Below, one piece after another: positions 38,155-62,264 of a stretch of 64,000 nucleotides of DNA; the stretch's first letter is position 1; each line of letters starts with the position of its first letter. The notes under the pieces were generated by a model. It did no database searches, was not told the DNA's origin, and saw nothing but the letters and a program-made list of their open reading frames with translations. The DNA lies in the IMG/VR virus record IMGVR_UViG_3300036944_001289, positions 145,283 through 209,282 of that record; one strand, 5' to 3'. The position numbers and the translations under genes are program-made.

Positions 38155-38555
38155 CAGAGAATTGGGCATGGGGCTCATTATACGAAAGTTCCTTTAACTA
38201 ATAAGTGAAAACTCCTTTGCCCTGGTCTCTGAAACCTTTTTATATGAAAACCTTTTTTGAACTAGAGGTTCCGACTTTTCCGAAAAAAGTTATCTGCGAT
38301 ATAACCACTATCTTTTCTGAAAAGGTTCCTTTTATGCAGCCAAAGGAACATCTATATAATTAATGTAACTATTTATTATGAAGCGACAACCATTAGCTTA
38401 TCCGAAATGTATAATATGAAATATTCTTTTAGGAGTTATATATCAAAGCTTTTCTGAAATGTATAATATGAAGATAGTATATAGCAGTTTCTGAAAAGTA
38501 TAATATGAAGACCAATTAAGGCTACAAATAATATGCAGCCCTAATAAGTGCTAAC

Positions 38556-38750
38556 TTATCCTTTATTACATTCTTCCCAACAAGTTAGCTCATCCTCGTT
38601 TTCTAATATTAATACCAGATCTTTTAAGTCATCAATTAGTTGTTGCAAATCTATTTTATCTTTAATGGCGTCTTCCTTTAATAGAGGATGCCCTTTAACA
38701 GGTTCTTTTTCTAGATATTTCTTTGCAAGTTCTAAATGTTTATTTGTCAT
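38556..38750 (-). CDS. Hypothetical protein
   Basis: Short ORF between iteron blocks. Confidence 0.45.
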   Translation of the reverse strand: MTNKHLELAKKYLEKEPVKGHPLLKEDAIKDKIDLQQLIDDLKDLVLILENEDELTCWEECNKG

Positions 38751-38986
38751 AATAATTAGGGTGCATAATAAGTATATACTTGTTCCATCCTATAAAGTGA
38801 AACATTATTATATGAAACCATTATTTAATACCGTTTCAGAAACGCTCTTATATGCAAAAGAGGTGATCAACCGTTTCAGAAAAGTATTATATGAAATATG
38901 TACTAGAGCGGTTTCTGAAAGCTACAAGAGGATATCAGATCAACAAACTTTTCAGAAATAAACGGATTTGAAAAATGAGTGAGAAA

Positions 38987-39025
38987 ATAATAGTAGGCTG
39001 CTTATATTAAGCAGCCTACTATTAT
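38987..39025 (-). terminator. Long hairpin/terminator
   Basis: ATAATAGTAGGCTGCTTA/TAAGCAGCCTACTATTAT. Confidence 0.65.
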
Positions 39026-39036
39026 GCTAATTACTT

Positions 39037-39399
39037 TTAGTCAATGCTGGGTTCTGAATCTTCGTCATCCGAATCCATATCTTCATCTTCTACATCCTCC
39101 ACCATATCATTCTTCTTAACCTTACCTGCCGCAATCAAACGACGCGCTTCCTTTTGCGCCTCCTTAAACTCTTCATACTTAGCCTTGCGACGAGCCTCCT
39201 TTTCCTCAGCCTCAATCTTATTCTTAGCTTCCGCTGCCAATTCCATCTCTTCCATATGCTGAATGGCCGCATCCAAAATTGCGGTCATCGTATCTTTTTC
39301 CGTCAAGTTAAGCTTCTTGCGGATTTCGATAATGCGATTCTTATCGGCTTCATGGAGTAGAGCTGCGGTGAACTTGGCTGGCACTTTTAGGGTCTTCAT
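39037..39399 (-). CDS. Putative RHH-like DNA-binding protein with acidic tail (paralogue of 48718)
   Basis: AKFTA beta strand, helix-helix, coiled coil. Confidence 0.5.
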   Translation of the reverse strand: MKTLKVPAKFTAALLHEADKNRIIEIRKKLNLTEKDTMTAILDAAIQHMEEMELAAEAKNKIEAEEKEARRKAKYEEFKEAQKEARRLIAAGKVKKNDMVEDVEDEDMDSDDEDSEPSID

Positions 39400-39453
39400 T
39401 TTAGTAGTTAGTTTGTTGTTGTTGTTAATAAGGGCTCTATCGGCCCTACATTT

Positions 39454-39469
39454 ATATTACTAAAGTTCC
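39454..39469 (-). promoter_or_regulatory. GGAAC-N5-TAnnAT phage promoter
   Basis: GGAAC TTTAG TAATAT. Confidence 0.65.
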
Positions 39470-39914
39470 GTTGTAAGAGTTGAAGGAGGATCCGAGGAAA
39501 AATAAGTCCTAAGCTTTTCAGAAAAGTAAAAAATGCAAGCCGCACTTTTCTGAAAAAATAGAATACACCTTTCATACCTGACTTTTCTGAAAAGCTTTGA
39601 ATGCTGCTTCCAATTCGTAAACCACTTTTCGAGGAACTTTGATATTATAAAGTTTAAGGGTCTATATTTTTCCTGTATACTATTTCAGTTCCTGCGTTTC
39701 GTACGCATTAAAATGCAAGGCTTTATATGATACTAATATAAAAGAAGCTTACAAGTACGCAGGAACAAGTACTTGTGCCTAGTAAGCAGGAACTGGAACA
39801 GAGTACTATATAGCCGTACTAAGAATCGGAACAATAAGAAAGGAGAGCCGCATAAAGCAGACTCTCCTTGTTCCTATATACTAGCTAACTAAAACTGTTC
39901 CTAGATACTATTGA

Positions 39915-40097
39915 TTACTTACTAATCTTATCATCGACCTTATTTGAGAAGTATAGCATGATATAACCGAATACTGCCATCTTAATGATTACTAGTACTT
40001 GCATTACTAGAGTAGTTTGTTGCTTGAATGTAGCTCCTTCTAAGATAGCCAGTATTAGAAAGAATAGTGTTAGTAGTAGATTGATAGCTGTACGCAT
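39915..40097 (-). CDS. Small 2-TM membrane protein
   Basis: Two hydrophobic helices. Confidence 0.45.
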   Translation of the reverse strand: MRTAINLLLTLFFLILAILEGATFKQQTTLVMQVLVIIKMAVFGYIMLYFSNKVDDKISK

Positions 40098-40228
40098 ATA
40101 GTATGATCTAATATGTATATGAGGTTCTTATATCCAAGAATAACAATGTGTTTCGGGGCTCTCAGAGCGCTGTTTGTCTCTGAGAGCTGGGCGGGGCTAT
40201 GATATCAGTGAGTGGGTTCTGTGAATGG

Positions 40229-40765
40229 TTAACTCATCTCGTCTAACCAGTTTTTGTAATAGGCTCTACCAGCTTTTGCTGCATTTGGACCACCTATAAA
40301 TAGTGTTAACCCACCTGAACCTACTACGAAACGTGGACCTCCACTTTGTTTATACAAAATCTCAGTGCAAGCCAAAATTGTAAGCTTACCACTAGCAATT
40401 GAATTAAAGAATGATAATGGATCATCCACGAGTGTGATGTCTTTTGTTTTGAATACTCCTTTAGCAATAGCATCTTCGATAGTTAATTTAGCCTCGTCTG
40501 CATCTGGACCTGGTTTACCAGTGTCGACGAATTCATAAGGCATATGTAGCATAAGGTCTTCAAACCCATAATTAGTGTAGATGTCTGAATTATTATCTTC
40601 TGGTAAAATTATAAAACAGGTTGGATCATCACCAAGACTATCATAGTTATCTTCGCACCTTACTACCGCGTTAGCTACTTTTGTTCCGTAGTCCTCGTCG
40701 GTGTTCTCTTTATAGATAGAAGCATAAGCTTCTGAAATTAACTTATAATCATGTTTGTCTTTCAT
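40229..40765 (-). CDS. Hypothetical late protein with ISE|A leader
   Basis: TAAATA promoter; LF..GP..AK shared with 41193. Confidence 0.6.
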   Translation of the reverse strand: MKDKHDYKLISEAYASIYKENTDEDYGTKVANAVVRCEDNYDSLGDDPTCFIILPEDNNSDIYTNYGFEDLMLHMPYEFVDTGKPGPDADEAKLTIEDAIAKGVFKTKDITLVDDPLSFFNSIASGKLTILACTEILYKQSGGPRFVVGSGGLTLFIGGPNAAKAGRAYYKNWLDEMS

Positions 40766-40962
40766 AGGTATATTTATTTATTCAGCGCTGCTCATAGATT
40801 TGAGAATCTTAGCTTGGGCTTCGAATTCTCTCTTGAAGCAGCATTATTTTTGTTTATATTTTGTTAGCATTCTGACATTTCTATGATCTCCCATACCTCT
40901 CTTGTAAATCCCTCTCCCATCCTCCTATAACCTTCCGGTGCCGCATTAGGTTTTTCGTTAAT

Positions 40963-41181
40963 TTAACTATGATTTTTAACTATTTTATTAACGTATTCCT
41001 TAGCTTCCTTATTACTTACCCCTACTAATACAGGTGTTTGATATAGAGGCTCTCCTACATATTCATATACTGTATATGTATTAAGAGCTACTTGCTTATT
41101 CTTCATCCATTGCTTTGTTACCGGGTTTTGTTCACTCACCCATTTATAGTCTTGTTCGATATGGAAGCTTTGATCGTTCAT
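40963..41181 (-). CDS. Hypothetical protein
   Basis: ORF in minus-strand array. Confidence 0.5.
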   Translation of the reverse strand: MNDQSFHIEQDYKWVSEQNPVTKQWMKNKQVALNTYTVYEYVGEPLYQTPVLVGVSNKEAKEYVNKIVKNHS

Positions 41182-41192
41182 ATGAGTAATAA

Positions 41193-41585
41193 TTAAAATA
41201 TACCATCACAGAAGCCTTGCTCAATACCATTAACAATTTCCAATACCTTAGCCTTATCTGGACCTGCTACAAACAATGCACCATCTACGCAAGTTGCATC
41301 TATATACTCTCCTTCTTCATCTACCTCATTTGGCGCCGTATAAAGTGCTACATAACCTGTCTTTGCTAACTTCTGGAAGTTAAGCATATTTGCTACTACA
41401 GTAACATTCTTAAGTTCTTTTACCCGTCCCTTAATATAATCCATATGATCTTTATACATATCCATCTCATCTGGATTACTTGTGCGTAAAGCATCCGAAA
41501 CCTCTTTAATGTTGCTAATAAAAGGACCAGGATCAGAGACTTCATGACCTTCATCACCGCCTAGGACTACTTTATAGATATTCAT
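41193..41585 (-). CDS. Hypothetical protein
   Basis: Downstream of GGAAC promoter. Confidence 0.6.
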   Translation of the reverse strand: MNIYKVVLGGDEGHEVSDPGPFISNIKEVSDALRTSNPDEMDMYKDHMDYIKGRVKELKNVTVVANMLNFQKLAKTGYVALYTAPNEVDEEGEYIDATCVDGALFVAGPDKAKVLEIVNGIEQGFCDGIF

Positions 41586-41622
41586 AATGTTTTAGATGTT
41601 ATTTGTTTTACTGTGCACTATA

Positions 41623-41638
41623 ATTATATGTTTGTTCC
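41623..41638 (-). promoter_or_regulatory. GGAAC-N5-TATAAT phage promoter
   Basis: GGAAC AAACA TATAAT. Confidence 0.7.
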
Positions 41639-41658
41639 GAGGGCTAACTAATTACTAA

Positions 41659-41907
41659 TTAAGCTTCCAAGTCAATATAAATCTCATCACCATTCTCATC
41701 CATAATAAGCTTACTAAGCTTATGATCTTTACCCACACCCCAATCACTCAGCTCATCAATAATACGCTGCACAGTGATAAGAGTCTTATCATTGTCGCCG
41801 AAACTAAAACTGTTACTTTCGCAGATGAAGTCGTATTGCTCATCACTGATATACTTTTCATCATACAAGGCACTTAGCTCTAAGATAGGTGTATATGTTG
41901 GTTTCAC
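41659..41907 (-). CDS. Hypothetical protein (GTG start)
   Basis: GTG 6 nt below GGAAC-N5-TATTAT at 41914-41929. Confidence 0.5.
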   Translation of the reverse strand: MKPTYTPILELSALYDEKYISDEQYDFICESNSFSFGDNDKTLITVQRIIDELSDWGVGKDHKLSKLIMDENGDEIYIDLEA

Positions 41908-41935
41908 GTTATTATAATATATTTGTTCCCTTTGC

Positions 41936-42118
41936 TTACTCTTCTTCGTCTTTGAAAAGTGCTTCAAGATACTCTCGATCCTGAGCTTTATCAAAAGCTT
42001 CATTGACAGATTTTACAAACTCTTTAAGCTGTTCAATAGTGTCTACATTATGTAGCGCTTCGCTTAAGTTATCCTTTGCGCACTCAATATAGGTTTCTTG
42101 TTTTTCTTTTTGAGTCAT
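41936..42118 (-). CDS. Hypothetical protein
   Basis: ATG 6 nt below promoter 42125-42140. Confidence 0.55.
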   Translation of the reverse strand: MTQKEKQETYIECAKDNLSEALHNVDTIEQLKEFVKSVNEAFDKAQDREYLEALFKDEEE

Positions 42119-42149
42119 ACCAATATATTATATTGGTTCCCGGGGCTTA

Positions 42150-42560
42150 CTATTGGCGTATCCCGTTTTTATATACAATTAGTTTTTTATTTGGATTATC
42201 TAATATAATATCCATTACATGATTAGTAATTACTTGTTCTGTATATGTAATTATTACACCGTTACTAAACATATTATTAAACCATTTATAGTACTTTGAA
42301 CTTTCGAGTATAACAACATAGTCTACAATATCAAAGGTAAGTATAAATACATTGTTATCTATACTCTTAAAAGCCAACCAATCTACTTCATCTGGGTCGA
42401 ACTGTCCTTTACTTTGTAGATTGTCTATATAGTATTGAAAGATACCATCTGATATCTCTTCTGGTGTATGTCTATTTTCTAGCTGATCTAGACGTGTATT
42501 AAAAAAGTGCTCAAGACTTGTAGTTGTTCTTATAACACATATTATAGCCTTGTTATTCAT
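42150..42560 (-). CDS. Hypothetical, local paralogue family
   Basis: SKYYK...LIVY.dG.R shared with 42557. Confidence 0.6.
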   Translation of the reverse strand: MNNKAIICVIRTTTSLEHFFNTRLDQLENRHTPEEISDGIFQYYIDNLQSKGQFDPDEVDWLAFKSIDNNVFILTFDIVDYVVILESSKYYKWFNNMFSNGVIITYTEQVITNHVMDIILDNPNKKLIVYKNGIRQ

Positions 42561-42955
42561 TTTATACGTTCTCCATCTCTATATACAATAAGCTCAGTAT
42601 TATTACTATCATGTATAAGCTTTAATATGTGTTCGTATATATCAATCCAATCGGTATTACTACTCACCATTTTCATGATTTTATAGTACTTAGATGTATC
42701 AGGAATAATATATACATCATTATATATTTCTCTTGTAATTTCAATAACACCATCATCAACCACCAAAAATGATACATTTTTAGGTATATATCCTTCTTTT
42801 TTAAGAATGCTATTAGCTACATAGTTATATACACCATCTAAGCCTGGGCGGCTGTTTAGTAGTCTTAAATCATTGCGATTTTCACTGTGCATATCCTCGA
42901 GTTCACGGTCAAACTCTCCAATACGCACTCTGCAATATATAGCGTCTTTAATCAT
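42557..42955 (-). CDS. Hypothetical, local paralogue family
   Basis: Same motif; ATGA coupling. Confidence 0.6.
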   Translation of the reverse strand: MIKDAIYCRVRIGEFDRELEDMHSENRNDLRLLNSRPGLDGVYNYVANSILKKEGYIPKNVSFLVVDDGVIEITREIYNDVYIIPDTSKYYKIMKMVSSNTDWIDIYEHILKLIHDSNNTELIVYRDGERIK

Positions 42956-43407
42956 ATACTTTTTACTATTAAACCTCCTGTTTTTTGTTCGTAATAATCT
43001 ACTATAACGTCAGTGGCATGTTCAATTATCTTAGATTGGCGATTAATTATACGTACAAAGGGTAATTCTTTAAAGGTTTCTAATACTGGGTCCATTATAC
43101 TATTTCTCCACATTAAGAATAACTGAATGGTTTGCTGATCCATAAGTTTTAAAGCTAAAGCCTTTTCATATGCTTCTTTAGGTGTACAGTTTAGCCAGAT
43201 TAGCGTATAAAAATTACTATATCTACCATATATCAAAGCAGGTAAACCTTTAAAGTAACCTAAAGCTGCATACTTAAGTTCTACAGAGAACATCTGATTC
43301 ATATCAAAGTCATACTCCAACGTAAACCCAGAATTTTCTAATGAATTACCTTTTACATATCTTGATTGTAAAAAGAAACCATTATTATTACAGCATAACA
43401 AATACAT
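42952..43407 (-). CDS. Hypothetical late protein
   Basis: TATAAATA upstream. Confidence 0.55.
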   Translation of the reverse strand: MYLLCCNNNGFFLQSRYVKGNSLENSGFTLEYDFDMNQMFSVELKYAALGYFKGLPALIYGRYSNFYTLIWLNCTPKEAYEKALALKLMDQQTIQLFLMWRNSIMDPVLETFKELPFVRIINRQSKIIEHATDVIVDYYEQKTGGLIVKSI

Positions 43408-43423
43408 ATATTTATTTATACAT

Positions 43424-43459
43424 AAAAAAAGGCTTTATATACTTATAAAGCCTTTTTTT
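43424..43459. terminator. Intrinsic terminator
   Basis: AGGCTTTATA/TATAAAGCCT hairpin with tracts. Confidence 0.7.
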
Positions 43460-43463
43460 AATT

Positions 43464-43652
43464 TTAATGTACGTCGTCGTACGGTATATAATTCTTGACC
43501 TTTTCTAGTGCTTCTACTATGCTATCATCTTTAGTAAACCCAGCCTTAAAGAGTTTATTTAAGGCTGTATCGATGTGCTTAGAAGTACTTTTATATGCCT
43601 TATATTCTTTAGCGTGTTGTTTAACACGCTTCATAAGATCATCTGTAGTCAT
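43464..43652 (-). CDS. Hypothetical protein
   Basis: ORF before terminator. Confidence 0.5.
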   Translation of the reverse strand: MTTDDLMKRVKQHAKEYKAYKSTSKHIDTALNKLFKAGFTKDDSIVEALEKVKNYIPYDDVH

Positions 43653-43859
43653 ATTAAAGGTCTTCAGTTACAACATCAGGATAACTAATGGCTACTGCCA
43701 GTGCAAACATCCCTTCTAGGACTGAGGCAGTCTCGCGAGTGCCTACAAATCCTTCACCTTGGACGTAGTATTTGTTAGTTTTGGTATTTTTAATAAGCAT
43801 ATTGTGTTTGGGTTAGCACAAAAATAATATCTTAGTTCCTAAGGATGTATTTTTCATTC

Positions 43860-44285: not shown

Positions 44286-44408
44286 CTTTAGTAGTTATTA
44301 AAGAGTCTGCGATACATTTTAGTATCTGCTCATCAGACACACCTTTTACATCATCATTAAAGATATGCATCTTATCGTACCCACTATTGGCATATATTGC
44401 TAACATTA

Positions 44409-44840: not shown

Positions 44841-44910
44841 ATATAGACAATAAGAAACCTTATTGGTTTATATTATTTATAAACCAATAAGGTTTAATCT
44901 GTTTTATTTG

Positions 44911-45102: not shown

Positions 45103-45103
45103 A

Positions 45104-45337: not shown

Positions 45338-45384
45338 ATGTTTGTTGCTTCCCCTAAATTATGTGTTAGTTCCTAAGGCTGCAT

Positions 45385-46188: not shown

Positions 46189-46563
46189 TTAGATGCTATT
46201 TAGTATGCGGTTTTGATCGAGAAACGTATCATCAACTTTTACAAGAAAAGGTTCATCACTATCTAGAATAGAAGGATCGATGAACAACGAAGGATTGTAA
46301 TAAAGTTCCTCGATTAGTTCATCGCGAGTGTTAGCAATAACAAACGGTACAGGATACTCATCCAAGAGATCTTGAAAACCAGTTGAGCTAAACCCATTAC
46401 TAACAGCCATCATAAGTTTTGCAACACATGCTGGTGTAAGCTTTTTATTGTTCTCCTTATAACAGATCACAATGTCAGTAATCAAATCCATTTGATATGA
46501 TCGAAGCGACTTAAACAGATCGTCTGTTGTGAGCTCAATGAGCTTTACGTTTGTTTGTTTCAT
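46189..46563 (-). CDS. Hypothetical protein
   Basis: Start moved to MKQTN below promoter 46576-46591. Confidence 0.5.
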   Translation of the reverse strand: MKQTNVKLIELTTDDLFKSLRSYQMDLITDIVICYKENNKKLTPACVAKLMMAVSNGFSSTGFQDLLDEYPVPFVIANTRDELIEELYYNPSLFIDPSILDSDEPFLVKVDDTFLDQNRILNSI

Positions 46564-46576
46564 GTTTACCTTAACA

Positions 46577-46795
46577 TTATTTGTTTGTTCCCTGATCGTC
46601 AGTTTCATCGTCTTCTTTATATGTATTATTATTCAATCTTCGGATAACTACTCTTAGCAAAAACGTATATATCCACGCATTTGCACTCCAAGTAGCGGTT
46701 GACCAATCTTTAGCACTAATAGATAGTACTAAGGCTAGCGATGAACCCATTAGATTAATTGCTGTTGCTATGTAAACCCACTTATAATACCTCAT
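46577..46795 (-). CDS. Small membrane protein
   Basis: Two hydrophobic segments. Confidence 0.45.
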   Translation of the reverse strand: MRYYKWVYIATAINLMGSSLALVLSISAKDWSTATWSANAWIYTFLLRVVIRRLNNNTYKEDDETDDQGTNK

Positions 46796-47286: not shown

Positions 47287-47330
47287 AAAGATGTTTAATG
47301 TTAGTACAAACGATATTATCTATTTGTTCC

Positions 47331-48468: not shown

Positions 48469-48717
48469 TTATATTTTAAGTTTGTTCCCTTTGCTTACGT
48501 TTATATAACTTTTTAGATATAAACTTAAATGTAGGCTTGGGCATAGGTTTGCGAATTGATTTGATCAACTCTACGATTTTAAGTTTACTATTCATAAAAT
48601 TAACATAGTGTCTAAAGAAACCTCTTTAGACACTATGTATGGGTATTCTGATGAATACCTCCACCACGTTACCTAAGCAACGAAAATAAAAAAAGGAGTT
48701 AATAACTCCTTTGTAGG

Positions 48718-49072: not shown

Positions 49073-49088
49073 ATTATATTTTAGTTCC
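49073..49088 (-). promoter_or_regulatory. GGAAC-N5-TATAAT phage promoter
   Basis: GGAAC TAAAA TATAAT. Confidence 0.7.
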
Positions 49089-49964: not shown

Positions 49965-50375
49965 TTATGGGAATTTTGTTAAAGTTCCTTTGGCATCAGT
50001 ATACCATACCCTTTTCAAGTTATATTGTCCAAGATAAAAAGCGCAGTTAGGGCAAGGAATACTATTATCTACTTCTCCATTGTTGTTAATGCGGATGTTA
50101 ATCATCTCAATCTTAGAAAAGTCATCAATAGATTTACCCTTACCAAGTGCATCCATTTCAGAGTGGATACCAGCAATATAATCCTTTTTATACTCTCTAG
50201 TACACTTATAAGTAGCAGAGATACGATTAGTCTTCTTATAATGGTTAGTACCGATCTCGATTATCTTTCCTTTTCTAACTAGAAATGATACATGAAAGCA
50301 TGGGCCAGATTTGTGCTTCTCAATCTTGAGAGCTCGAGCAATATCAATTAATCTATTGAATTGCTTGTTGTTCAT
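49965..50375 (-). CDS. Cytidine/dCMP deaminase-like zinc protein
   Basis: HSE...PCPNC; start moved to MNNKQ because upstream is tRNA sequence. Confidence 0.75.
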   Translation of the reverse strand: MNNKQFNRLIDIARALKIEKHKSGPCFHVSFLVRKGKIIEIGTNHYKKTNRISATYKCTREYKKDYIAGIHSEMDALGKGKSIDDFSKIEMINIRINNNGEVDNSIPCPNCAFYLGQYNLKRVWYTDAKGTLTKFP

Positions 50376-50505: not shown

Positions 50506-51177
50506 TCATTTTACTAAAAGTGATTTTATATACTCCTCAGTTAGTTGTTCTTTAGTAAGAAAAATAATATTATTATACTGTTCCTTGAGATGTTGAATTT
50601 TTGTTGACTGTACTTGCCTAGCAAAGGGGTTCTTAGGATCTAGGAATAGGTTATAATCTGGTAAAAAAAAGTCACTAAAATAATTATGTTCTATACCTTC
50701 ACTATCTTTCCATCTTATTGGTTTGGGACGTATCCATAAAACTTTTAAATTATCAAGTATATTAGCAAGATTTAACTCCCAACTAGAATCTAGCAGTACA
50801 CCTTTGTACTTAATAGTTTTCTTCTTTAACCGTCTATGTGGTGAGTTTAGTGCTATATTTCGTAATTTTATTTTTGTCTCTTCAGATTGTGATCTTTTTC
50901 CATATTTTACATAAATCAATGCTGCATTCTCTTTTCGATTTCGTTTTTTAATTAGCCCATTTTTAGATGCTTTGCATATAGTTAAGGCTGTGCAGTTGAA
51001 TTTAGTCGCACATTCAGCATAACTTTTACCAGTATCATAATAGTTTTGGACTTCTTCCCAATTTATATCATCATAACGAGTATATGAACATGTTTTACAC
51101 CATCTTAAATGATTTCTTTTGGCGCCAACTTTAAGTCCACTTATATCTTTATCACATGTAGGACAGTATATTATCAT
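50506..51177 (-). CDS. Putative homing endonuclease (Zn finger, HTH, NUMOD-like, PD-(D/E)xK)
   Basis: CPTC..HLRWC; SEETK.KL; SSWE..A..LD; YFSDF.L...LDPK. Confidence 0.7.
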   Translation of the reverse strand: MIIYCPTCDKDISGLKVGAKRNHLRWCKTCSYTRYDDINWEEVQNYYDTGKSYAECATKFNCTALTICKASKNGLIKKRNRKENAALIYVKYGKRSQSEETKIKLRNIALNSPHRRLKKKTIKYKGVLLDSSWELNLANILDNLKVLWIRPKPIRWKDSEGIEHNYFSDFFLPDYNLFLDPKNPFARQVQSTKIQHLKEQYNNIIFLTKEQLTEEYIKSLLVK

Positions 51178-51571: not shown

Positions 51572-51677
51572 TTTATAATTTTATGAAAGTTCCACCAGCC
51601 CGTTTTTATTGAGGTGGTCGCTGGCTCTCCCTCAGTCGATCATATCCCCAAGCTTTATGGGCTTGGTTCTTGAATGG

Positions 51678-52489: not shown

Positions 52490-52546
52490 ACTTGTATATG
52501 TTATTCTTGTTCCTGATGCTATTCAGGATGTATGTAATTAAAAAAT

Positions 52547-52631: not shown

Positions 52632-53035
52632 ATTAATCTCTCAGGTGACACTAACTATTAACCCATTACTCTAATTATTAACAAACAACATTATCACCTG
52701 AGAGAAAATTAAAAAAAGAACTAAATGAAGGATATCAACTTTTATAGTGGTTTAGCCTATCTTCAATGAAGTCAGCGTTAGCTCATAGGTTATATCCATT
52801 ACCACCTTGTATCGCTTAGAAAGCGATTAGCATTTTCAATTAACTTATCTTTTATATGACATAATTTTATAGAAGTTCCAAGGTTAAAAGATTTGATAAT
52901 CTCCATGGTAGTTATTCTGCTATAGTTATTTCAGGAGGGTTTCTCTCTACTGCTGCTGTGCTGCTCACAACATTTGGAGCATCCTAAGACTACCTTAATC
53001 ATCCTAGGCCATTCTTACGAATCGATTATCAAAAT

Positions 53036-53949: not shown

Positions 53950-53965
53950 ATTGTATTAAAGTTCC
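53950..53965 (-). promoter_or_regulatory. GGAAC-N5-TACAAT promoter of the RNA array
   Basis: GGAAC TTTAA TACAAT. Confidence 0.65.
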
Positions 53966-54305: not shown

Positions 54306-54502
54306 GTTTTATTTTATATCAGTTCCTGCGGATTAACCAATCTCTTTACCTCTAAAGTAAGCACATAAAGCCATCCAAAAAGCTGTTAAAAACGTACAGA
54401 TTGCATAACCTGCACCCATATTCTTGTATATAAGTGCAGATACTGATCCAAGTATAATACAAGGTACTGTACCATCTAAAGCGATGTATCGTAGTATTCT
54501 TT

Positions 54503-54709: not shown

Positions 54710-54735
54710 AAAAGTATTGGGAAAAGGAAATCGGA

Positions 54736-55016: not shown

Positions 55017-55117
55017 CGGTAGTCAGGTAGAGCGCGGCTTTTTTCTGACGCATTGAGCGCCTGAGCGACCTTGGCTTGGGATTCGGGACTTAGTTTGGGA
55101 TTCATAAATTATTCATT

Positions 55118-56480: not shown

Positions 56481-56541
56481 AATCGTACCCTCCGTTTAAT
56501 GGTGAATGTTCGATAACATGTGATTTAGTATAAGTAATTAT

Positions 56542-57162
56542 ATGTCTCATTTTTATATTTTATATAAGATAGTAAATAAAGTCAATAATAAATTCTATAT
56601 AGGTGTACATAAGACTGTCGATATACACGATAACTATATGGGTTCTGGTCATCTTATAAAGGCTGCTATTGCAAAATATGGTATCGAGAATTTTACAAAA
56701 GAAATAATAAACGTATTTACAAATAGTGTAGATGCGTATAATAAAGAAAGAGAAATTATAACAAAGGAGTTATTAGAGAGCAAGCAGTGTTATAATATAA
56801 AGGAAGGTGGTCGTGGTGGGTTTGAACATATAAGACAGAAAAATCTACATAAGTGGTCTAAAGGTAAGGTAATTATACATAACCCTTTAACTGGGCAGCA
56901 AACTAAAGTATCGACTGATTTATTACAATCTTATTTGGACAAAGGATGGTTAAAGGGATTTAAGCCTGAAGCACTAAAACGGATGTCGGAGTCTGGTAAA
57001 ATTAAAATACAAACAGCAGAACATCGCAGTAAGAACTCTCAAACCAAAAAGGGTTGCAAAAAATTAATACCACCAGAACATAGTATGTATAAACAGAGAT
57101 ATAAATTTATTAAAATTGAGAAGGTAGAAGAATATATAGCTGCAGGTTGGAGACTGTTTTAG
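56542..57162 (+). CDS. GIY-YIG homing endonuclease (Seg-like)
   Basis: LYKI.N.VN.KFYIGVH; YMGSG; KYG.ENF.KE; YN...GG. Confidence 0.88.
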   Translation: MSHFYILYKIVNKVNNKFYIGVHKTVDIHDNYMGSGHLIKAAIAKYGIENFTKEIINVFTNSVDAYNKEREIITKELLESKQCYNIKEGGRGGFEHIRQKNLHKWSKGKVIIHNPLTGQQTKVSTDLLQSYLDKGWLKGFKPEALKRMSESGKIKIQTAEHRSKNSQTKKGCKKLIPPEHSMYKQRYKFIKIEKVEEYIAAGWRLF

Positions 57163-57221
57163 ATCAATAACGATGTTCAACCTAATCTTTAGTTAGATGT
57201 AAACATCTTTCATCACCATAA

Positions 57222-57833
57222 TTAGTCCTGTGTTAAAGCTGTATTTTGTGGATTTATATTAGAGCTCTCTGCATGCCATGTGATTGGGCTCATTACTTTA
57301 TAATTTATTTCCTTTGGCTTAACAAAAGAGAAGTCACGCCAAACAATTCTATTATTAGGTTGAGCTGCTATTTGACCAGATCCATCTCTAAGTAATAGTA
57401 CGTGATAACATTTATGTTCTGGCGGATATTGACTGAAGCCATTATCGGTATGGTCTAAAGTAAACCAGTACTGACCTTCTACAGGATTACCTTTACGCTG
57501 CTTATAAGTGCAGCACATCTCACGTATATATTCATACTGTACAGTAGAGAAGTCCCATCCGTGATTGTCCCACATCTGTAACTCATGCAGCTCATGAACT
57601 ACTTTACTCTTAGGTAGCTCCCATCTAAGCATATGTATAGGTATACGAGCCCATTGTGCACCACTCTCACACAATATGCTAAAATGTAGACATCTGCTTG
57701 GTATAGATGTAACACCAAAAATAACGCAAGGTTCATATTGTCCTTTATAAGAAGCATCCATACCATATAGAATTTGTTTATCTACAAATCCGTATAGATG
57801 CTGAGGTATTGAAGCGTTTAAACAGTTATGCAT
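57222..57833 (-). CDS. Hypothetical phage protein
   Basis: LNA.IP; GA.WAR.PI; FT.D; EHK; G.IAAQPNNR. Confidence 0.65.
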   Translation of the reverse strand: MHNCLNASIPQHLYGFVDKQILYGMDASYKGQYEPCVIFGVTSIPSRCLHFSILCESGAQWARIPIHMLRWELPKSKVVHELHELQMWDNHGWDFSTVQYEYIREMCCTYKQRKGNPVEGQYWFTLDHTDNGFSQYPPEHKCYHVLLLRDGSGQIAAQPNNRIVWRDFSFVKPKEINYKVMSPITWHAESSNINPQNTALTQD

Positions 57834-58063
57834 TATCTATAGGTTATCCAATCTTTAATTAGCTGTATACTAAAATCAATAGCTTCTTCGTCGGTTAGTG
57901 TATCTTTTTCATATACACGTTTAATTTCTGCCTTAAGATCTCGAAATGTATTACCATCAATCTCGATACTAACTGGCCATTCTACTGTTTCTTCAAAAGC
58001 TTTTTCAGCTTGTTTTTCTATCTCTGGGGGTGTTTCTAACTGAGTAGTTTCGGTGGGAGACAT
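57833..58063 (-). CDS. Hypothetical late protein
   Basis: TAAATA upstream. Confidence 0.5.
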   Translation of the reverse strand: MSPTETTQLETPPEIEKQAEKAFEETVEWPVSIEIDGNTFRDLKAEIKRVYEKDTLTDEEAIDFSIQLIKDWITYR

Positions 58064-58211
58064 ATAAATTATTTAGCTTGAAGACAGAGGCCAATATTGC
58101 TTATTACAAAGCCAATAAATACAAGGAAGGTAGTCTTATCACCCTTGTATAAGGAGGCAGCAGCAACACATAGCTGTATTGTAGCGATTAAAATTATTAG
58201 CTTACTGCTCA

Positions 58212-58433
58212 TTAAATTACGCCTAGACCTTCAAACTTTAAAATGTTATCGTAGATAAACTTTACTAAACGTTGATGGTCTTTAATATTGTATTGTACTC
58301 TTACCATCATTGCTCTCTTATCTTTATCGGTTATATTACTATTACGGATATGTTCTAGTGTGATACTCTGAGCTTTTTCAAAGTCAGGCTCGTTCTGTAC
58401 TTGTTCAGCGATTGAACGTAAGAATGATTTCAT
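58212..58433 (-). CDS. Hypothetical protein
   Basis: ATG 5 nt below promoter 58439-58454. Confidence 0.55.
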   Translation of the reverse strand: MKSFLRSIAEQVQNEPDFEKAQSITLEHIRNSNITDKDKRAMMVRVQYNIKDHQRLVKFIYDNILKFEGLGVI

Positions 58434-59083
58434 AATAGATTGTATTGTTGTTCCTTATACTTTAACATATATAACCAGCCATCACTAAGCCATTTAAGGT
58501 AATCTTCTGCTTTATAAGTATCACCATACCATCCACAAGAGTAAGGATGATGCGCTTCTATAAGCTCAAGACCATTAAGTGTCATTCCAACATCTAGTGT
58601 ACCATTCCAATCCTTTGGTATTTTAATTGGTATCTTTGGAGCAGGTAGCTCTTCTTTACCTAAATACCACCAAGCGGAGATTACCTTCCCTTTAGAGATG
58701 TAATACCTCCACTCATTTTCAAACTCTACGAATTCAGAGCAAAGATGTGGACCAACCTCTACGCTACCATCAGCCATTCTACCTTGATAGCGCTTATAAC
58801 GATCAGCAGGCTTAACATGTATGCCGTTATTGGGCCATTCGTTCTGTACCCATGTATTACGTTTAACTAAAGACTTCGTAAAGTGAGGAAAGTAGTTAGG
58901 CTCAATTTTAAGATCTAAAATAGATTCGATCCAAAGAGCATTACCAAATGGTGTATAGCCTTCTGGAATGCTCTTTGGATCGCTAACTATTACATAAGGT
59001 ATCTTTTGCATAGAGCATGTAGCTACAATCGATACACCATTACGAGTATCTTTAACATCATGCTCTATTGCAAACCCTTTCAT
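58430..59083 (-). CDS. ATP-grasp protein (DUF4343/R2K-like)
   Basis: VKP....K..G; SE.V.F..EWRY; LDVG...G..LIE. Confidence 0.7.
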   Translation of the reverse strand: MKGFAIEHDVKDTRNGVSIVATCSMQKIPYVIVSDPKSIPEGYTPFGNALWIESILDLKIEPNYFPHFTKSLVKRNTWVQNEWPNNGIHVKPADRYKRYQGRMADGSVEVGPHLCSEFVEFENEWRYYISKGKVISAWWYLGKEELPAPKIPIKIPKDWNGTLDVGMTLNGLELIEAHHPYSCGWYGDTYKAEDYLKWLSDGWLYMLKYKEQQYNLL

Positions 59084-59694
59084 TGTACTAAGTTCAGACC
59101 ATATGGTGTTAGATCAACAGTCTTAGATAAGTCAAAGATATTATCATGACTATCGACTGTGTCTAACTCCATCTTAGCTTTAGCAATAGCTTTAACTAGA
59201 TGCGCCTTTTTAGCTTTGCGCAGCATATTTACAGCAATTGCTTCACATTGCTCAAACGATGGTAGTACTTTACCCCAGCGTGCAATGATATGATAGATAT
59301 CATCTGACCATTTATAACCGTTAGACTCACGCCAATTCTTTACGATACCTACTAGGATAGGATCATCGATGCGTGCTTCTGCGGGATACCAAATCTCAAA
59401 CTTGGAGTATAGTCCGCACTCTACAGCTCTGTTTGCAGCTTCTAGTACTCGTACAGGTATAGCATCTACACTATAATCTTCCATAACACACGATTTAGGG
59501 CAAAGAGTCTTATACACAACCATCTCATGTGCGTCCATCACACGGTATGGATTACGTGTAATAGTTTCACCGTTCATGGCCTTTTTCTGACCCTTGAGAC
59601 CGAGCTTTTCAATAAGCTCATTTGCTACTGCATCATTAGCCATTTGAGAGGCTAATGATGTTGAGGTTTCTACTTCAAAAGTTTCGATTTGCAT
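59080..59694 (-). CDS. Hypothetical phage protein
   Basis: LGL.GQ; IP.RVL; DPILVG; IARWG. Confidence 0.6.
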   Translation of the reverse strand: MQIETFEVETSTSLASQMANDAVANELIEKLGLKGQKKAMNGETITRNPYRVMDAHEMVVYKTLCPKSCVMEDYSVDAIPVRVLEAANRAVECGLYSKFEIWYPAEARIDDPILVGIVKNWRESNGYKWSDDIYHIIARWGKVLPSFEQCEAIAVNMLRKAKKAHLVKAIAKAKMELDTVDSHDNIFDLSKTVDLTPYGLNLVQ

Positions 59695-59695
59695 A

Positions 59696-59989
59696 TTAGT
59701 CTACGACTTCAGATTGTTTGAAATAACGAACAGCTCGAGAACGCATCTCAAGAAGTTCACTCTGAACAATGCGAGGAATAACAACCTCGGGCCCAGTACC
59801 GGTATTGGCACGATTAAGAGCAATCATTTTACCCTTATCACGATTAAAACGATCTCCTTTCTTAAGAGCTGTAAAAGACCAACCAATACCAACCTTAGCA
59901 GGATCATTGGTAAGCTTAGTAGCGGCAACAACACCAACATGAGCATTGGTGCGGGGATCGTGAATGTATTTAATAATGGTATTGTTCAT
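59696..59989 (-). CDS. Hypothetical phage protein
   Basis: GWS....D.F....G..IAL.RA; promoter 59999-60014. Confidence 0.6.
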   Translation of the reverse strand: MNNTIIKYIHDPRTNAHVGVVAATKLTNDPAKVGIGWSFTALKKGDRFNRDKGKMIALNRANTGTGPEVVIPRIVQSELLEMRSRAVRYFKQSEVVD

Positions 59990-60045
59990 AGCGAGTTGAT
60001 TTTATTTTTGTTCCGGTTGTTGATTTTATTCTACTGAAAAATTCG

Positions 60046-60354
60046 TTACTTATCGTAATTTGAATACACTGTGCAGGTTTGCACATCTCCATCAATAGTC
60101 TTACCTACCACAGTAACACTAGATGGTTCTGGTTTGATATCATTATAACTAATTTTAGCAGCAGGTTCTACTTTAAAGGTAGGGGTAGTAGCAGGTTCTT
60201 TCTTCTTTGCACCTTTTGCAGTGTAATTTTTAAGAAAGCTCTCTAGTGATCCGTGCTTAGTTATAAGCAGATCAATGTAAGGACGATGATAAAGCTTTTG
60301 CTTACGTCCCGATATATTACAAGTGACAATCAGAGGTGTGTTATATTCGTTCAC
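60046..60354 (-). CDS. Hypothetical protein (paralogue of 7133)
   Basis: GTG 5 nt below promoter 60360-60375. Confidence 0.55.
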   Translation of the reverse strand: MNEYNTPLIVTCNISGRKQKLYHRPYIDLLITKHGSLESFLKNYTAKGAKKKEPATTPTFKVEPAAKISYNDIKPEPSSVTVVGKTIDGDVQTCTVYSNYDK

Positions 60355-60380
60355 ACCTTATTGTATGGTTGTTCCGGGTG

Positions 60381-60635
60381 TTACTTCTTTTTGATAGAAG
60401 GTTTGCGGCCTTTTTTCTTGGTTAGTACTACAGGCTCTAGAAGAACAGTTGTAGTTACTTCTTTATCAAGATATTTTTTAGGTAGCTTTTGATCTTGAGC
60501 CTTCTTTAGGATAGGGTCAAGCTGAATAGTTGTATTGATATTCTTATCATTATTGTATGAATAGAAATAAGTCTCTTGCTTTTGAGTAGTAAATAATGAT
60601 TTGAATAATTTGATAATAGATTTAATAATGGCCAT
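60381..60635 (-). CDS. Hypothetical basic late protein
   Basis: TAAATA upstream; KKKGRKP. Confidence 0.5.
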   Translation of the reverse strand: MAIIKSIIKLFKSLFTTQKQETYFYSYNNDKNINTTIQLDPILKKAQDQKLPKKYLDKEVTTTVLLEPVVLTKKKGRKPSIKKK

Positions 60636-60644
60636 ATAGTATAT

Positions 60645-61121
60645 TTATTTATTTTTATTTTGTTCCCAAGGAGTGTAACTATTTGCTGCGGCTTCTTCAG
60701 GGCATAATACCTTAACCCAACCACCTCTTATATGTAGTTTACCAGGCTTACCAGTCTTTTCGCAAGTAATTAGTGACATATAGTGAGCCATTTGCTCACA
60801 GCCAAAAAGAAATTGTTTAGCTTTATCTACGTGTTTAATGTATTGATTTATATCAATATCATGTAGCTTAGTCCATTTATCATCGTAAGATAAATTGTAA
60901 TGTATTCTAATAGTACCAAATTTTTGCTTTACGCTAGTGAGCTCGATATTTGGCATATCGAGCGTTACACTTTCTTTAACATAAAAGCGTGTAGATTTTG
61001 TTGCTAAACAAAAAGCATGAACGATTTGATACCATCCATCTCCACACTGACAGCCATACTCAAGATTTGCAAATAGCTCTGGAAACTCTTCCTTTAACTT
61101 ATTATACACTTCAGGTGTCAT
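60645..61121 (-). CDS. Hypothetical phage protein
   Basis: CGDGWY; K.KFG..R; TCE..G.PG...GW...LC. Confidence 0.65.
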   Translation of the reverse strand: MTPEVYNKLKEEFPELFANLEYGCQCGDGWYQIVHAFCLATKSTRFYVKESVTLDMPNIELTSVKQKFGTIRIHYNLSYDDKWTKLHDIDINQYIKHVDKAKQFLFGCEQMAHYMSLITCEKTGKPGKLHIRGGWVKVLCPEEAAANSYTPWEQNKNK

Positions 61122-61122
61122 A

Positions 61123-61674
61123 TTACTTACACATTAGGTTAAAACCTTCTTCGATCTTACTGACAAGATCATTTATTACATTCTCTGTTAACTCGTCTTT
61201 ATAATGACCATAATAGTCTTTAATCTTTACATAGTGAGCTTTACCAAATGTTTGTAAATAACTTATCTTATCACGTGCGTTAGTAAAACCTGGATGCTGA
61301 TTATCTACAAGAACAGAGTAACAAGGCTCATCAGTAAACTTATGAGATCTTGGTGTTTTCATATATAATGCATGCCATAGATCTCTACCAATAATTTGAT
61401 TCTGAGTAAAACCTAGATTGAATGCATCATTCATCCCTTGACCATACTCTGATGTAGCTGCAGTGAGCATATATACATTTGGATATAATCGCCTCAAAGT
61501 TTTAAGAAACTCGTGCGCATTTGGGCGAAGTCTTACCCCATAGCTTTCAGTTGGTTGCATATCCCAACCTCCGGCATCTAGAGTAAAATCTACACGCACT
61601 CTATCCTTACCGAAGTTATTCCATTCAGCATGGATTAGCGTTTCATCTAAATCTAAAAATAAGAACTTATTCAT
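61123..61674 (-). CDS. HAD-superfamily phosphatase (FCP1/NIF-like)
   Basis: LDLDETLIH; RP....FL; TAA; LVDN. Confidence 0.8.
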   Translation of the reverse strand: MNKFLFLDLDETLIHAEWNNFGKDRVRVDFTLDAGGWDMQPTESYGVRLRPNAHEFLKTLRRLYPNVYMLTAATSEYGQGMNDAFNLGFTQNQIIGRDLWHALYMKTPRSHKFTDEPCYSVLVDNQHPGFTNARDKISYLQTFGKAHYVKIKDYYGHYKDELTENVINDLVSKIEEGFNLMCK

Positions 61675-61799
61675 TTGTGTTTACTGTTTTGGCTATCTCT
61701 TCCAAAAGGGTTTGTTTTTCTTCAAATTCTTCTGGTAGAAGCATATAAAAGTCTATGGCTTTTTCTAGAGAGCTCATAAATCTATTTTGTTTTTGTTCC

Positions 61800-62264
61800 T
61801 TAATGTAAAGGTGTGAGATGTTGCTCTGAAACGACGTAACAATCAGCGAATCTTTCATCTTCAAGCATGTTTAAAGTAAAATTTTCTAGTGTTATTGCTC
61901 CTACTAATAATATTTTGCTAATATTCTTAGCATCTACTGCAGCTAATACTAGTTGTTTAATACCTATCTTTTTATATTTCTCTAAGTCTTTCTTAGATAC
62001 TTTTAAAAGTTTATTAGGACCAGTCCAAGTCACCGTTTTAACTTGCGTGTTATCTGGAAAATCTATACCACCGTCACCTTTTACTGATTCGTATATCGTT
62101 AGATCCATTGGAAGGCCTGAGTATTTACTATAGGCCATTTCACCAAGATTACCGACTATAAAATTTTCTAGATTGATCTTCTGTTTGGAAGCGTGTGAAT
62201 ACTTCTTTTTAAATGCGTTAGATAAACAGATATTAAGTTCTTCCGCAGTTAAGATAAACTCCAT
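61800..62264 (-). CDS. PD-(D/E)xK-like nuclease
   Basis: G.LGE.A; DGGIDF; QVKT; TATAAATA promoter. Confidence 0.5.
   Translation of the reverse strand: MEFILTAEELNICLSNAFKKKYSHASKQKINLENFIVGNLGEMAYSKYSGLPMDLTIYESVKGDGGIDFPDNTQVKTVTWTGPNKLLKVSKKDLEKYKKIGIKQLVLAAVDAKNISKILLVGAITLENFTLNMLEDERFADCYVVSEQHLTPLH

Follow-up and report, generated by a model that had tools for sequence, protein, structure and literature searches.

GGAAC boxes in a block of small genes and tRNAs

We analyzed a 64,000-nucleotide stretch (the window; positions 145,283 to 209,282 of IMG/VR record IMGVR_UViG_3300036944_001289) of a 209-kb phage genome (G000) from a shale-gas metagenome. The phage is a distant T4 relative, with a Gp23 capsid protein, a Gp20 portal protein and a single gp55-like late sigma. 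One minus-strand block of the genome holds small ORFan genes and 27 tRNAs, and just upstream of these genes lie copies of the motif GGAAC-N5-TAnnAT. A sequence-only reading had listed 22 such sites, most of them in front of small genes and none in front of structural or replication genes, and this observation was confirmed. An exact search returned 20 matches in the window, compared to 0.74 +/- 0.79 in dinucleotide-preserving shuffles, in which the largest count was 3. Genome-wide, we found 33 matches, 30 of them on the minus strand. Of the 22 listed coordinates, 18 matched exactly, while the other four (45358, 46576, 47315 and 49973) carry GGAAC-N5 followed by a hexamer whose first base is not T, and are hence variants of the pattern. 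Two exact sites had been missed, 39677(-) and the doubtful 46294(-), and further variants lie at 50569, 60651 and 61784. The sites and variants in the window are as follows (distances to start codons are downstream of the site):

38177..38192 (-): GGAAC-tttcg-TATAAT, in the ORF-poor control region (37,950-39,950); the next minus-strand CDS is 272 nt downstream and has its own late motif
38345..38360 (+): GGAAC-atcta-TATAAT, facing an array of TTTCNGAAA palindromes
39454..39469 (-): GGAAC-tttag-TAATAT, 54 nt upstream of the ATG of ORF 39037-39399 (120 aa)
39633..39648 (+): GGAAC-tttga-TATTAT, divergent from 39677(-)
39677..39692 (-): GGAAC-tgaaa-TAGTAT, 101 nt upstream of ORF 39408-39575
41623..41638 (-): GGAAC-aaaca-TATAAT, 37 nt upstream of the ATG of ORF 41193-41585 (130 aa)
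41914..41929 (-): GGAAC-aaata-TATTAT, just after the stop of ORF 41936-42118; next ATG 49 nt downstream
42125..42140 (-): GGAAC-caata-TAATAT, ATG 6 nt after the hexamer (ORF 41936-42118, 60 aa); leaderless layout
43824..43839 (-): GGAAC-taaga-TATTAT, ATG at 23 nt (ORF 43654-43800, 48 aa)
45358..45373 (-): variant GGAAC-taaca-CATAAT, ATG at 20 nt (ORF 45104-45337)
46294..46309 (-): GGAAC-tttat-TACAAT, inside ORF 46189-46608; doubtful, possibly a chance match or an internal promoter
46576..46591 (-): variant GGAAC-aaaca-AATAAT, at the end of ORF 46577-46795
47315..47330 (-): variant GGAAC-aaata-GATAAT, ATG at 28 nt (ORF 46942-47286)
48473..48488 (-): GGAAC-aaact-TAAAAT, ATG at 19 nt (ORF ending at 48139)
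49073..49088 (-): GGAAC-taaaa-TATAAT, 40 nt upstream of ORF 48718-49032 (104 aa; paralogue of 39037-39399, homologue in the relative G007)
49973..49988 (-): variant GGAAC-tttaa-CAAAAT, ATG at 12 nt (ORF 49730-49960, 76 aa, conserved in all five complete relatives)
50569..50584 (-): variant GGAAC-agtat-AATAAT, 67 nt upstream of tRNA-Arg (50426-50501)
51578..51593 (-): GGAAC-tttca-TAAAAT, ATG 6 nt after the hexamer (ORF 51251-51571); leaderless layout
52498..52513 (-): GGAAC-aagaa-TAACAT, ATG at 8 nt (ORF 52103-52489)
52864..52879 (-): GGAAC-ttcta-TAAAAT, 232 nt upstream of tRNA-Leu (52547-52631)
53950..53965 (-): GGAAC-tttaa-TACAAT, at the head of an ORF-free stretch that contains tRNA-Met (53504-53582)
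54311..54326 (-): GGAAC-tgata-TAAAAT, ATG 5 nt after the hexamer (ORF 53982-54305)
58439..58454 (-): GGAAC-aacaa-TACAAT, ATG 5 nt after the hexamer (ORF 58212-58433)
59999..60014 (-): GGAAC-aaaaa-TAAAAT, ATG at 9 nt (ORF 59696-59989)
60360..60375 (-): GGAAC-aacca-TACAAT, GTG 5 nt after the hexamer (ORF 60046-60354)
60651..60666 (-): variant GGAAC-aaaat-AAAAAT, ATG at 15 nt (ORF 60381-60635)
61784..61799 (-): variant GGAAC-aaaaa-CAAAAT, 109 nt upstream of ORF 61123-61674 (NIF-like phosphatase)

The geometry of the motif is strict. Across the genome, 33 sites had a spacing of 5 bp, compared to 0-6 at every other spacing from 0 to 25. GGAAC was the only enriched pentamer at that position (33 observed, 2.0 expected), no single-mismatch variant of GGAA was enriched, and only the fifth base may be A. 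No other position from -30 to +50 is conserved and there is no -35, so the copies are independent short motifs and not repeated DNA. Within the hexamer, A at -11 and T at -7 are kept even when T at -12 is lost, as in a sigma-70 -10 element. In total, 36 of 38 sites are co-oriented with the genes.

Structural and replication genes use other promoters. None of 48 called genes in window 1-37904 has the motif within 60 nt upstream, whereas 21 have the late ATAAATA motif and 5 have TTGA-N18-20-TAnAAT. Canonical sigma-70 promoter matches, in turn, are not enriched in window 40000-59999 (78 found, 84 +/- 9 in shuffles), so the GGAAC class is the only non-late promoter class of the small-gene block.

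Conservation and exchange with the -35 element

The design recurs in many uncultured aquatic relatives, at about 41% core-protein identity. The relative G007 has 77-81 sites of the form AAGGAA(A/C)-N5-TATAAT, 56 of them with ATG exactly 6 nt downstream (a leaderless layout), and the relative G011 has 28-37 sites (AGGAAC-TCTGA-TATAAT). Dozens of IMG/VR fragments carry up to 26 co-oriented sites in 12 kb, and the larger fragments carry Gp23. Overall, 625 unique sites came from 104 sources; in 441 of these, ATG lies 5-6 nt after the hexamer, with T favoured at -1. G011 and half of G007 carry G at -14, or TG, that is, an extended -10.

In two relatives the box coexists with a correctly spaced -35: 12 of 81 G007 sites (about 1.4 expected) and 6 of 13 sites in G006 also have TTGA at 16-18 bp spacing. 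At one orthologous gene, the sister phages G001 and G002, which lack the box, have TTGAC plus -10; G000, G007 and a further genome, G012, have GGAAA plus -10; and G006 has both.

These data bear on whether the motif is a promoter at all. It could instead be an RNA-level signal, for processing or translation of polycistronic RNA, or a recombination cassette boundary like the PeSL elements of T4-type phages. In line with this, AAGGA resembles a Shine-Dalgarno core, the G007 box reads TAAGGAA, resembling a Shine-Dalgarno sequence, almost every small gene has its own copy, and T4-type phages shuffle genes through promoter cassettes (PMC2839356). However, the box lies 17-19 nt from the ATG, too far for a Shine-Dalgarno sequence, and these phages do not use such sequences at all. 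In G000, the distance to the start codon varies from 5 to more than 50 nt, while that to the hexamer never varies. Copies also precede tRNAs, the TATAAT, TG and TTGA partners are promoter elements, and there are no extra stem-loops upstream. We therefore consider this reading very unlikely. PeSL cassettes (early promoter plus stem-loop flanking ORFan genes; Arbiol et al. 2010, PMC2839356) share the modular layout, in which nearly every small gene of unknown function has its own early-type promoter, but differ in promoter architecture and in the stem-loop, for which we saw no enrichment upstream of the promoters.

Searches for a phage-encoded reader

The sequence-only reading had inferred either a phage activator or sigma-appropriation system, or a lineage-specific host promoter element, and our results support this interpretation in part. 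The sites form a distinct class of putative promoters, which fits neither a T4 MotA box nor ECF spacing, as had been proposed. A sigma-appropriation system of the T4 kind, in contrast, was not supported. We found no AsiA or MotA C-terminal domain (MotCF) match, even at E <= 10, no sigma other than the gp55-like late sigma in G000, G007 and G012, and no transcription-factor-like protein whose presence follows the motif. Moreover, AsiA-type remodelling of sigma region 4 would prevent use of the -35 present in the G006 and G007 composite promoters. T4 middle promoters likewise retain a sigma-70-type -10, replace -35 with a phage-specific upstream box and occur in dozens of copies ahead of non-late genes. 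Here, however, the box lies at -20, not -30, has a different sequence, coexists with a functional-looking -35 and marks the ORFan and tRNA block, which looks early and not middle.

A different phage protein might still read the box, either made from the few canonical promoters or delivered in the virion. It would bind GGAA(C/A) and recruit or stabilise host RNA polymerase, working like MotA but at -20 and compatibly with sigma region 4; the sites would then be a delayed-early or middle class. GGAA is almost invariant, as in activator or ECF boxes, and T4 sets a precedent for replacing -35 recognition. The box is confined to the lineages G000 and G006/G007/G011 and absent from G001 and G002, which use -35; this fits a phage-lineage-specific factor as well as it fits different hosts. 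G000 hexamers are often weak (TAAAAT, TACAAT, TAACAT) and lack both TG and -35, so the box must supply much of the binding energy. Three families of unknown function follow the motif's distribution: a 98-aa protein with a late promoter (G000 33998-34294), a 95-aa protein and a 158-aa early protein (window 60645-61121). Yet genes specific to the motif-bearing phages are metabolic or of unknown function, and none of the motif-specific families has a DNA-binding signature, although fast-evolving small early proteins could hide a reader from BLASTP, phmmer and Pfam. The small-gene block has no other non-late promoter class from which an activator could first be made, and none of the roughly 12 genes behind canonical promoters is specific to the motif-bearing phages. 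Composite promoters carry a correctly spaced -35, and G011 promoters, with TG plus a perfect TATAAT, should fire unaided. Finally, we infer from helix geometry that the GGAA major groove faces the polymerase, which leaves little room for an independent protein. This reading remains possible, but tentative.

Alternatively, a host or unrecognised phage sigma might read the whole 17-19 bp block from AAGGAAC through TATAAT as one compact promoter, with its upstream-reading domain next to region 2 and not on the beta flap. GGAAC is the classic ECF -35 word, the block from -24 to -7 is continuous, in many phages the spacer is also biased (TCTGA), and the class is kept strictly apart from late promoters. 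We nevertheless consider this unlikely. The -10 is the primary-sigma consensus TATAAT, with TG in some phages, a 5-bp spacing is not known for any sigma-70-family member, no extra sigma gene was found in G000, G007 or G012, and the box coexists with TTGA at primary-sigma spacing. ECF promoters (-35 GGAAC, 16-17 bp spacer, -10 CGT-like) share the identical and equally stringent pentamer; here, however, the spacing to the downstream element is 5 bp, nothing is conserved at +16/17, the -10 is TATAAT, and no ECF sigma was found in G000 or G007.

A putative early promoter class with a box in place of -35

The reading we favour, with a probability of roughly 50%, is that these are promoters for the host's multisubunit RNA polymerase carrying a sigma-70-family (primary-type) sigma, most likely the early class of this distant T4-like phage. 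This corresponds to the lineage-specific element read by the host polymerase that had been offered as the alternative, and it remains unproven. In this view, the TAnnAT hexamer is the -10 element. With the hexamer at -12 to -7, the GGAA(C/A) box lies at -22 to -18, one helical turn upstream, and would supply the upstream anchor that -35 normally gives. We propose that a surface of the holoenzyme itself reads the box, the candidate being the region that already touches the spacer around -21 to -17, namely the beta' zipper and zinc-binding domain, and sigma domain 3. The analysis itself establishes the motif, its strict geometry, gene context and conservation across relatives, its coexistence and exchange with -35, and the absence of recognised MotA/AsiA or further sigma genes; promoter activity, early timing, the start point and the protein surface that reads the box are inferred.

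The closest precedent is the Z-element of the T7 early promoters A1 and A2, where it was first found (Yuzenkova et al. 2011, EMBO J, PMC3173786). This 5-bp spacer element lies at -22 to -18 from the start point, and 4 bp upstream of a -10-like element in lacUV5. It acts through the beta' zipper, can replace -35 when the -10 is strong, and acts together with -35 when both are present. The box described here lies 5 bp upstream of the hexamer, mostly without -35 and sometimes with it. Its sequence differs, however (GGAA(C/A) against AACCT and AACAT), it is offset by about 1 bp, and dependence on the zipper is only proposed by analogy. GGAA is also essentially invariant over more than 600 sites, whereas the Z-element consensus is described as loose, with single substitutions costing less than 2-fold; such strictness is more typical of a dedicated sequence-specific reader. 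In addition, late promoters never carry the box (0 of 54 in G000, 0 of 191 in other loci at N4-N6), which a purely core-enzyme contact would not obviously predict. Nor was the box enriched in 401 genomes of one phylum or in five metagenome-assembled genomes (MAGs) that hold related phage contigs, none of them an established host, and no public RNA run holds this phage. Extended -10 (TGn) promoters are likewise independent of -35 and have a consensus TATAAT, and TG at -15/-14 is present in G011 and in about a quarter of all sites. G000 itself, in contrast, has almost no G at -14 (2 of 33), and its conserved element lies further upstream, at -22 to -18.

If the holoenzyme does read the box, naked phage DNA could be transcribed immediately after injection. 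In the many copies with a start codon 5-6 nt after the hexamer, transcription should, in this view, begin at the A of ATG and give leaderless mRNAs.

Enrichment and geometry of the box in the window and the genome

An exact search for GGAAC-N5-TAnnAT returned 20 sites in the window, compared to 0.74 +/- 0.79 (maximum 3) in dinucleotide-preserving shuffles, so that the enrichment proposed by the sequence-only reading was confirmed. Of the 22 sites proposed there, 18 matched the pattern exactly, while the remaining four (45358, 46576, 47315, 49973) carry GGAAC-N5 followed by CATAAT, AATAAT, GATAAT or CAAAAT. Two exact sites had been missed: 39677(-) and 46294(-), the latter located inside an ORF and doubtful. 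The window forms the last 64 kb of a 209,282-bp IMG/VR record (hereafter G000), whose 118-bp terminal repeat marks a circular assembly, and the whole genome contains 33 exact sites, 30 of them on the minus strand. Spacing is strictly 5 bp, with 33 sites at N5 against 0-6 at every other spacing from 0 to 25, and GGAAC is the only enriched pentamer at this position (33 observed, 2.0 expected). No single-mismatch variant of GGAA is enriched, and only the fifth base may be A. Nothing else from -30 to +50 is conserved, indicating that the copies are independent short motifs rather than repeated DNA and lack a -35. Every hexamer reads TAnnAT or nAnAAT; T at -12 is dispensable, whereas A at -11, A at -8 and T at -7 are kept, as in a sigma-70-type -10.

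The genome is 33% G+C and gave no nucleotide match among cultured phages. It encodes a Gp23-type major capsid protein, a Gp20-type portal, a tail sheath, baseplate proteins, family B DNA polymerase, gp41-like helicase, gp47-like nuclease, UvsY and one gp55-like late sigma (phrog_234, E = 8e-28). It is therefore a very distant T4 relative, its capsid protein being at most 34% identical to that of any cultured phage, with cyanophages as the best matches. The record came from a shale-gas metagenome; among public sequencing runs, only DNA runs (shale gas, freshwater) hold the sequence, and two RNA runs were linked to it only through a related protein. The sites lie in one continuous minus-strand block (genome 183-209 kb and 1-51 kb, joined across the assembly junction) that holds small, mostly unannotatable genes together with 27 tRNA genes, all on the minus strand.

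Only two words are strongly enriched upstream of genes, namely GGAAC and ATAAATA, the T4-type late promoter; a further candidate, TGATTAA, turned out to be stop-codon context. In window 1-37904, none of 48 genes has the box, 21 have the late motif and 5 have TTGA-N18-20-TAnAAT, in agreement with the claim of the sequence-only reading that structural and replication genes do not use it. Canonical sigma-70 promoter matches are not enriched in the small-gene block (78 found, 84 +/- 9 in shuffles). Start codons have no Shine-Dalgarno sequence upstream (22 of 337 genes, equal to random positions), and G is depleted there. The following features of the window and the block accompany the sites:

Window 38200-39960, both strands: an ORF-poor control region with about 10 copies of the palindrome TTTC(N)GAAA, several of which abut TGTATAAT-ATG, an extended -10; the region also has five GGAAC sites in divergent orientation and two 29-bp G+C-rich direct repeats at 38056 and 38126, and looks like an operator array or an origin region.
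Window 39037-39399(-) and 48718-49032(-): two paralogous small charged proteins (120 and 104 aa) of unknown function, each directly behind a GGAAC promoter, with one homologue at the end of the early block of the relative G007 and none in the relatives G001 or G002.
Window 50426-50501, 52547-52631, 53504-53582 and G000 37.5-45 kb: tRNA genes of the block, some of them downstream of GGAAC sites.
Window 52900-53950: about 1 kb between two GGAAC promoters with no ORF of 40 aa or more and no Rfam match other than tRNA, which may encode an unknown non-coding RNA.
Window 56542-57162(+): a SegE-like GIY-YIG homing endonuclease gene on the opposite strand inside the minus-strand block.
Window 58430-59083(-), 61123-61674(-) and 62464-63474(-): early-block enzymes, namely an R2K-clade ATP-grasp protein, a NIF/CTD-like phosphatase and an RNA ligase.

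Box-type sites in relatives and their relation to the -35 element

The capsid protein has more than 600 relatives in IMG/VR, from which we retrieved four complete genomes (G001, G002, G006, G007) and two fragments from one sample (G011, G012). A tree of 50 single-copy core proteins gave (G000,(G001,G002),(G006,(G007,G011/12))), with 40-50% pairwise identity. All of them share the late motif and lack Shine-Dalgarno sequences.

Table. Box-type promoter sites in relatives of G000.
G007: 77-81 sites, AAGGAA(A/C)-N5-TATAAT, 73-76 on one strand; 56 have ATG exactly 6 nt after the hexamer, with T at -1.
G011: 28-37 sites with the tight consensus AGGAAC-TCTGA-TATAAT, which adds an extended -10 TG.
G006: 13 sites.
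G001, G002: none above chance; they use TTGA(a/c)-N16/17-TATAAT-N6-ATG.

To assess the distribution more globally, we scanned IMG/VR for AAGGAAC-N4-A-TATAAT-N6-ATG. At least dozens of contigs carry several hits, and the retrieved stretches hold up to 26 co-oriented sites in 12 kb. Pooling yielded 625 unique sites from 104 sources with the consensus wwAA-GGAAC-tctgA-TATAAT-AA, ATG at 5-6 nt in 441 sites with T at -1, TG at -15/-14 in 161 sites and a TTGA -35 in only 32 sites. The position of the ATG, with T at -1, gives indirect support to a transcription start 6-8 nt downstream of the -10 hexamer. The presence of the same promoter in unrelated phage types would have favored recognition by the host; however, every multi-site contig looks like a fragment of a genome of about 170-220 kb, and the larger ones carry Gp23. 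Similarly, a limited BLAST search of cultured phages with one promoter gave only single chance hits, and literature searches for this motif in phages found nothing relevant. The design is therefore a hallmark of a widespread aquatic T4-like group, and we found it in no other phage type.

We next examined the relation of the box to the -35. No conservation was seen from -40 to -27, and TTGA was present at 0 of 38 sites in G000 and 32 of 625 pooled sites. In G007, in turn, 12 of 81 box sites also have TTGA at 16-18 bp spacing from the hexamer (about 1.4 expected), as do 6 of 13 sites in G006, in the layout TTGAnn-N5-AGGAAA-N5-TATAAT-N6-ATG. At one conserved gene (the G000 92217-92459 family), G001 and G002 have TTGAC plus a -10, G000, G007 and G012 have GGAAA plus a -10, and G006 has both. 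On this comparative evidence alone, the box and the -35 appear as alternative or additive upstream elements of one promoter type. The -35-type promoters of G001 and G002 also show weak spacer conservation (A at -21/-20, T at -18 and C at -16), of which C at -16 is shared with the box-type consensus. An apparent 25-copy motif in G002, which first looked promoter-linked, was instead a 42-bp tandem repeat at 86.6-88.6 kb and 193.1-193.8 kb (core CTTACAGAAGTATA, 12 exact copies of the core), most likely within coding sequence.

The leaderless layout is not restricted to box-type sites, as TAnAAT-N6-ATG occurs 32-87 times per genome in all relatives, whatever the upstream element, and late ATAAATA motifs also sit 4-6 nt from the ATG. 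Together with the lack of Shine-Dalgarno sequences, this predicts leaderless mRNAs on a genome-wide scale and a host that does not depend on Shine-Dalgarno sequences.

Comparison with described promoter classes and search for a reader

The closest precedent is the Z-element of T7 A1 and A2, a 5-bp spacer element at -22 to -18 from the start point, and 4 bp upstream of a -10-like element in lacUV5, which is sensed through the beta' zipper and can replace -35 when the -10 is strong (PMC3173786). The position of the box, exactly 5 bp upstream of the hexamer, matches within about 1 bp and the logic is the same. In contrast, the sequence and the stringency differ: the consensus is GGAA(C/A) rather than AACCT or AACAT, with only the AAC trinucleotide shared at an offset of about 1 bp, and GGAA is essentially invariant, while the Z-element consensus is loose.

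Other classes fit less well. With respect to T4 middle promoters, nothing is conserved around -30, where the MotA box (TGCTTtA) is centered, and neither PF09158 (MotCF) nor PF09010 (AsiA) gave a match at E <= 10 in G000, G007, G011, G012 or G006. The pentamer GGAAC, invariant in G000, equals an ECF-type -35 box, but the spacing is 5 bp to TATAAT instead of 16-17 bp to a CGT-type -10, nothing is conserved 16-17 bp downstream, PF08281 gave no match in G000 and TIGR02937 matched only the gp55-like gene in G000 and G007. A sigma-54 promoter (-24 GG/-12 GC, GG-N10-GC) was rejected because the GC position is occupied by TA within TATAAT. The T4-type late promoter, TATAAATA at -10 with no upstream element, is a separate class in the same genomes, and TATAAATA never has the box at N4-N6 (0 of 54 in G000 and 0 of 191 in other loci). 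A Bacteroidota primary-sigma promoter (-7 TAnnTTTG, -33 TTTG) is likewise not matched, as the hexamer TAnnAT is followed by A or T and no TTTG-containing word is enriched upstream of genes. A Shine-Dalgarno-like signal was rejected because the box is 17-19 nt from the ATG, its distance to the ATG varies in G000 and copies precede tRNAs. Finally, no stem-loop of the kind expected in a PeSL cassette was apparent, since the folding energy of the 45 nt upstream of the sites equals that of local controls in G000, G007 and G011.

We then searched for a phage-encoded reader. Searches of G000, G007, G011, G012 and G006 for sigma region 2, sigma region 4, ECF sigma and gp55-like families found only the gp55-like gene, except that G006 alone also encodes a complete ECF-type sigma at 34511-35014 (195 aa, 49 bits to TIGR02937), in its early region near its RNA ligase. 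Comparing gene presence across the genomes by BLASTP and phmmer found nothing resembling a transcription factor that follows the motif. The only clean G000/G007/G012-specific protein is a DenV-like glycosylase, and the other lineage-specific families are phosphoesterase, ThyX, YopX, NTP-transferase, DNA ligase, a methyltransferase and three small families of unknown function. One of the latter, a 158-aa early protein, has no informative relatives, and the most widespread small early protein (76 aa) is also present in phages without the box.

Attempts to link the phage to a host were negative. Five GTDB metagenome-assembled genomes holding related capsid genes are taxonomically scattered (Bacteriovoracaceae, Terrimicrobiaceae, 'Proteobacteria', an archaeon) and show no motif enrichment. 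In 401 genomes of the phylum of two of them, the only phylum covered, box counts equal the reversed-pattern control, with at most 4 per genome. A search with the NTP-transferase gave no host signal. The lack of Shine-Dalgarno sequences had first suggested a Bacteroidota host, but this is weakened because relatives use TTGA/TATAAT promoters and none uses TAnnTTTG.

Interpretation and implications

We conclude with high confidence (about 0.85-0.9) that these are promoters with a sigma-70-type -10 in which the GGAAM box at -22 to -18 would do the work of -35; they are probably the early class, and many are predicted to produce leaderless mRNAs. What the analysis establishes is the motif with its geometry, context and conservation, whereas promoter activity, start point, timing and the identity of the reader, including any dependence on the beta' zipper, are inferred from sequence without transcript data. 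With moderate confidence (about 0.5), we favor direct reading by the host holoenzyme, as no other non-late promoter class exists in the block, the box is compatible with a -35, G011-type promoters (TG plus a perfect TATAAT) should fire unaided, no phage factor is detectable and, by our inference from helix geometry, the GGAA major groove faces the polymerase. A phage-encoded or virion-delivered reader remains a serious, albeit less likely, rival, given that GGAA is extremely stringent, the hexamers of G000 are weak and sister phages do without the box. The interpretation offered by the sequence-only reading is thus partly supported: an unusual promoter class, which extends well beyond this window, is right, sigma appropriation of the T4 kind is not supported, and a polymerase-read element at -20 is the best current reading.

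There is a real chance, although it is less likely than not, that a dedicated and so far unknown reader recognizes the GGAA(C/A) box at -20 with near-absolute specificity and thereby replaces -35 recognition. Such a reader could be a small phage protein riding on RNA polymerase, or a lineage-specific surface of the host polymerase or sigma, and would operate across a widespread, uncultured clade of aquatic T4-like phages whose early genes would be expressed as leaderless mRNAs. This would be a new mode of promoter recognition and the first natural, genome-scale promoter class built on the -22 to -18 spacer position.

T4-like phages outside the T-even group lack MotA and AsiA, and how they organize non-late transcription is poorly known. 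Our analysis defines a compact putative promoter of about 18 bp (AAGGAAC-N5-TATAAT) that can be recognized by eye and occurs dozens of times per genome in many large uncultured aquatic phages, providing a ready annotation tool for gene starts, operons and the early class. It also offers a natural test bed for the proposal, so far resting on two T7 promoters, that contacts with the spacer at -22 to -18 can stand in for -35, and short, strong promoters that need no -35 are useful parts for synthetic biology. Finally, the fixed TATAAT-N6-ATG layout predicts mass use of leaderless mRNAs, which, together with the complete lack of Shine-Dalgarno sequences, constrains what the unknown hosts of these phages can be.
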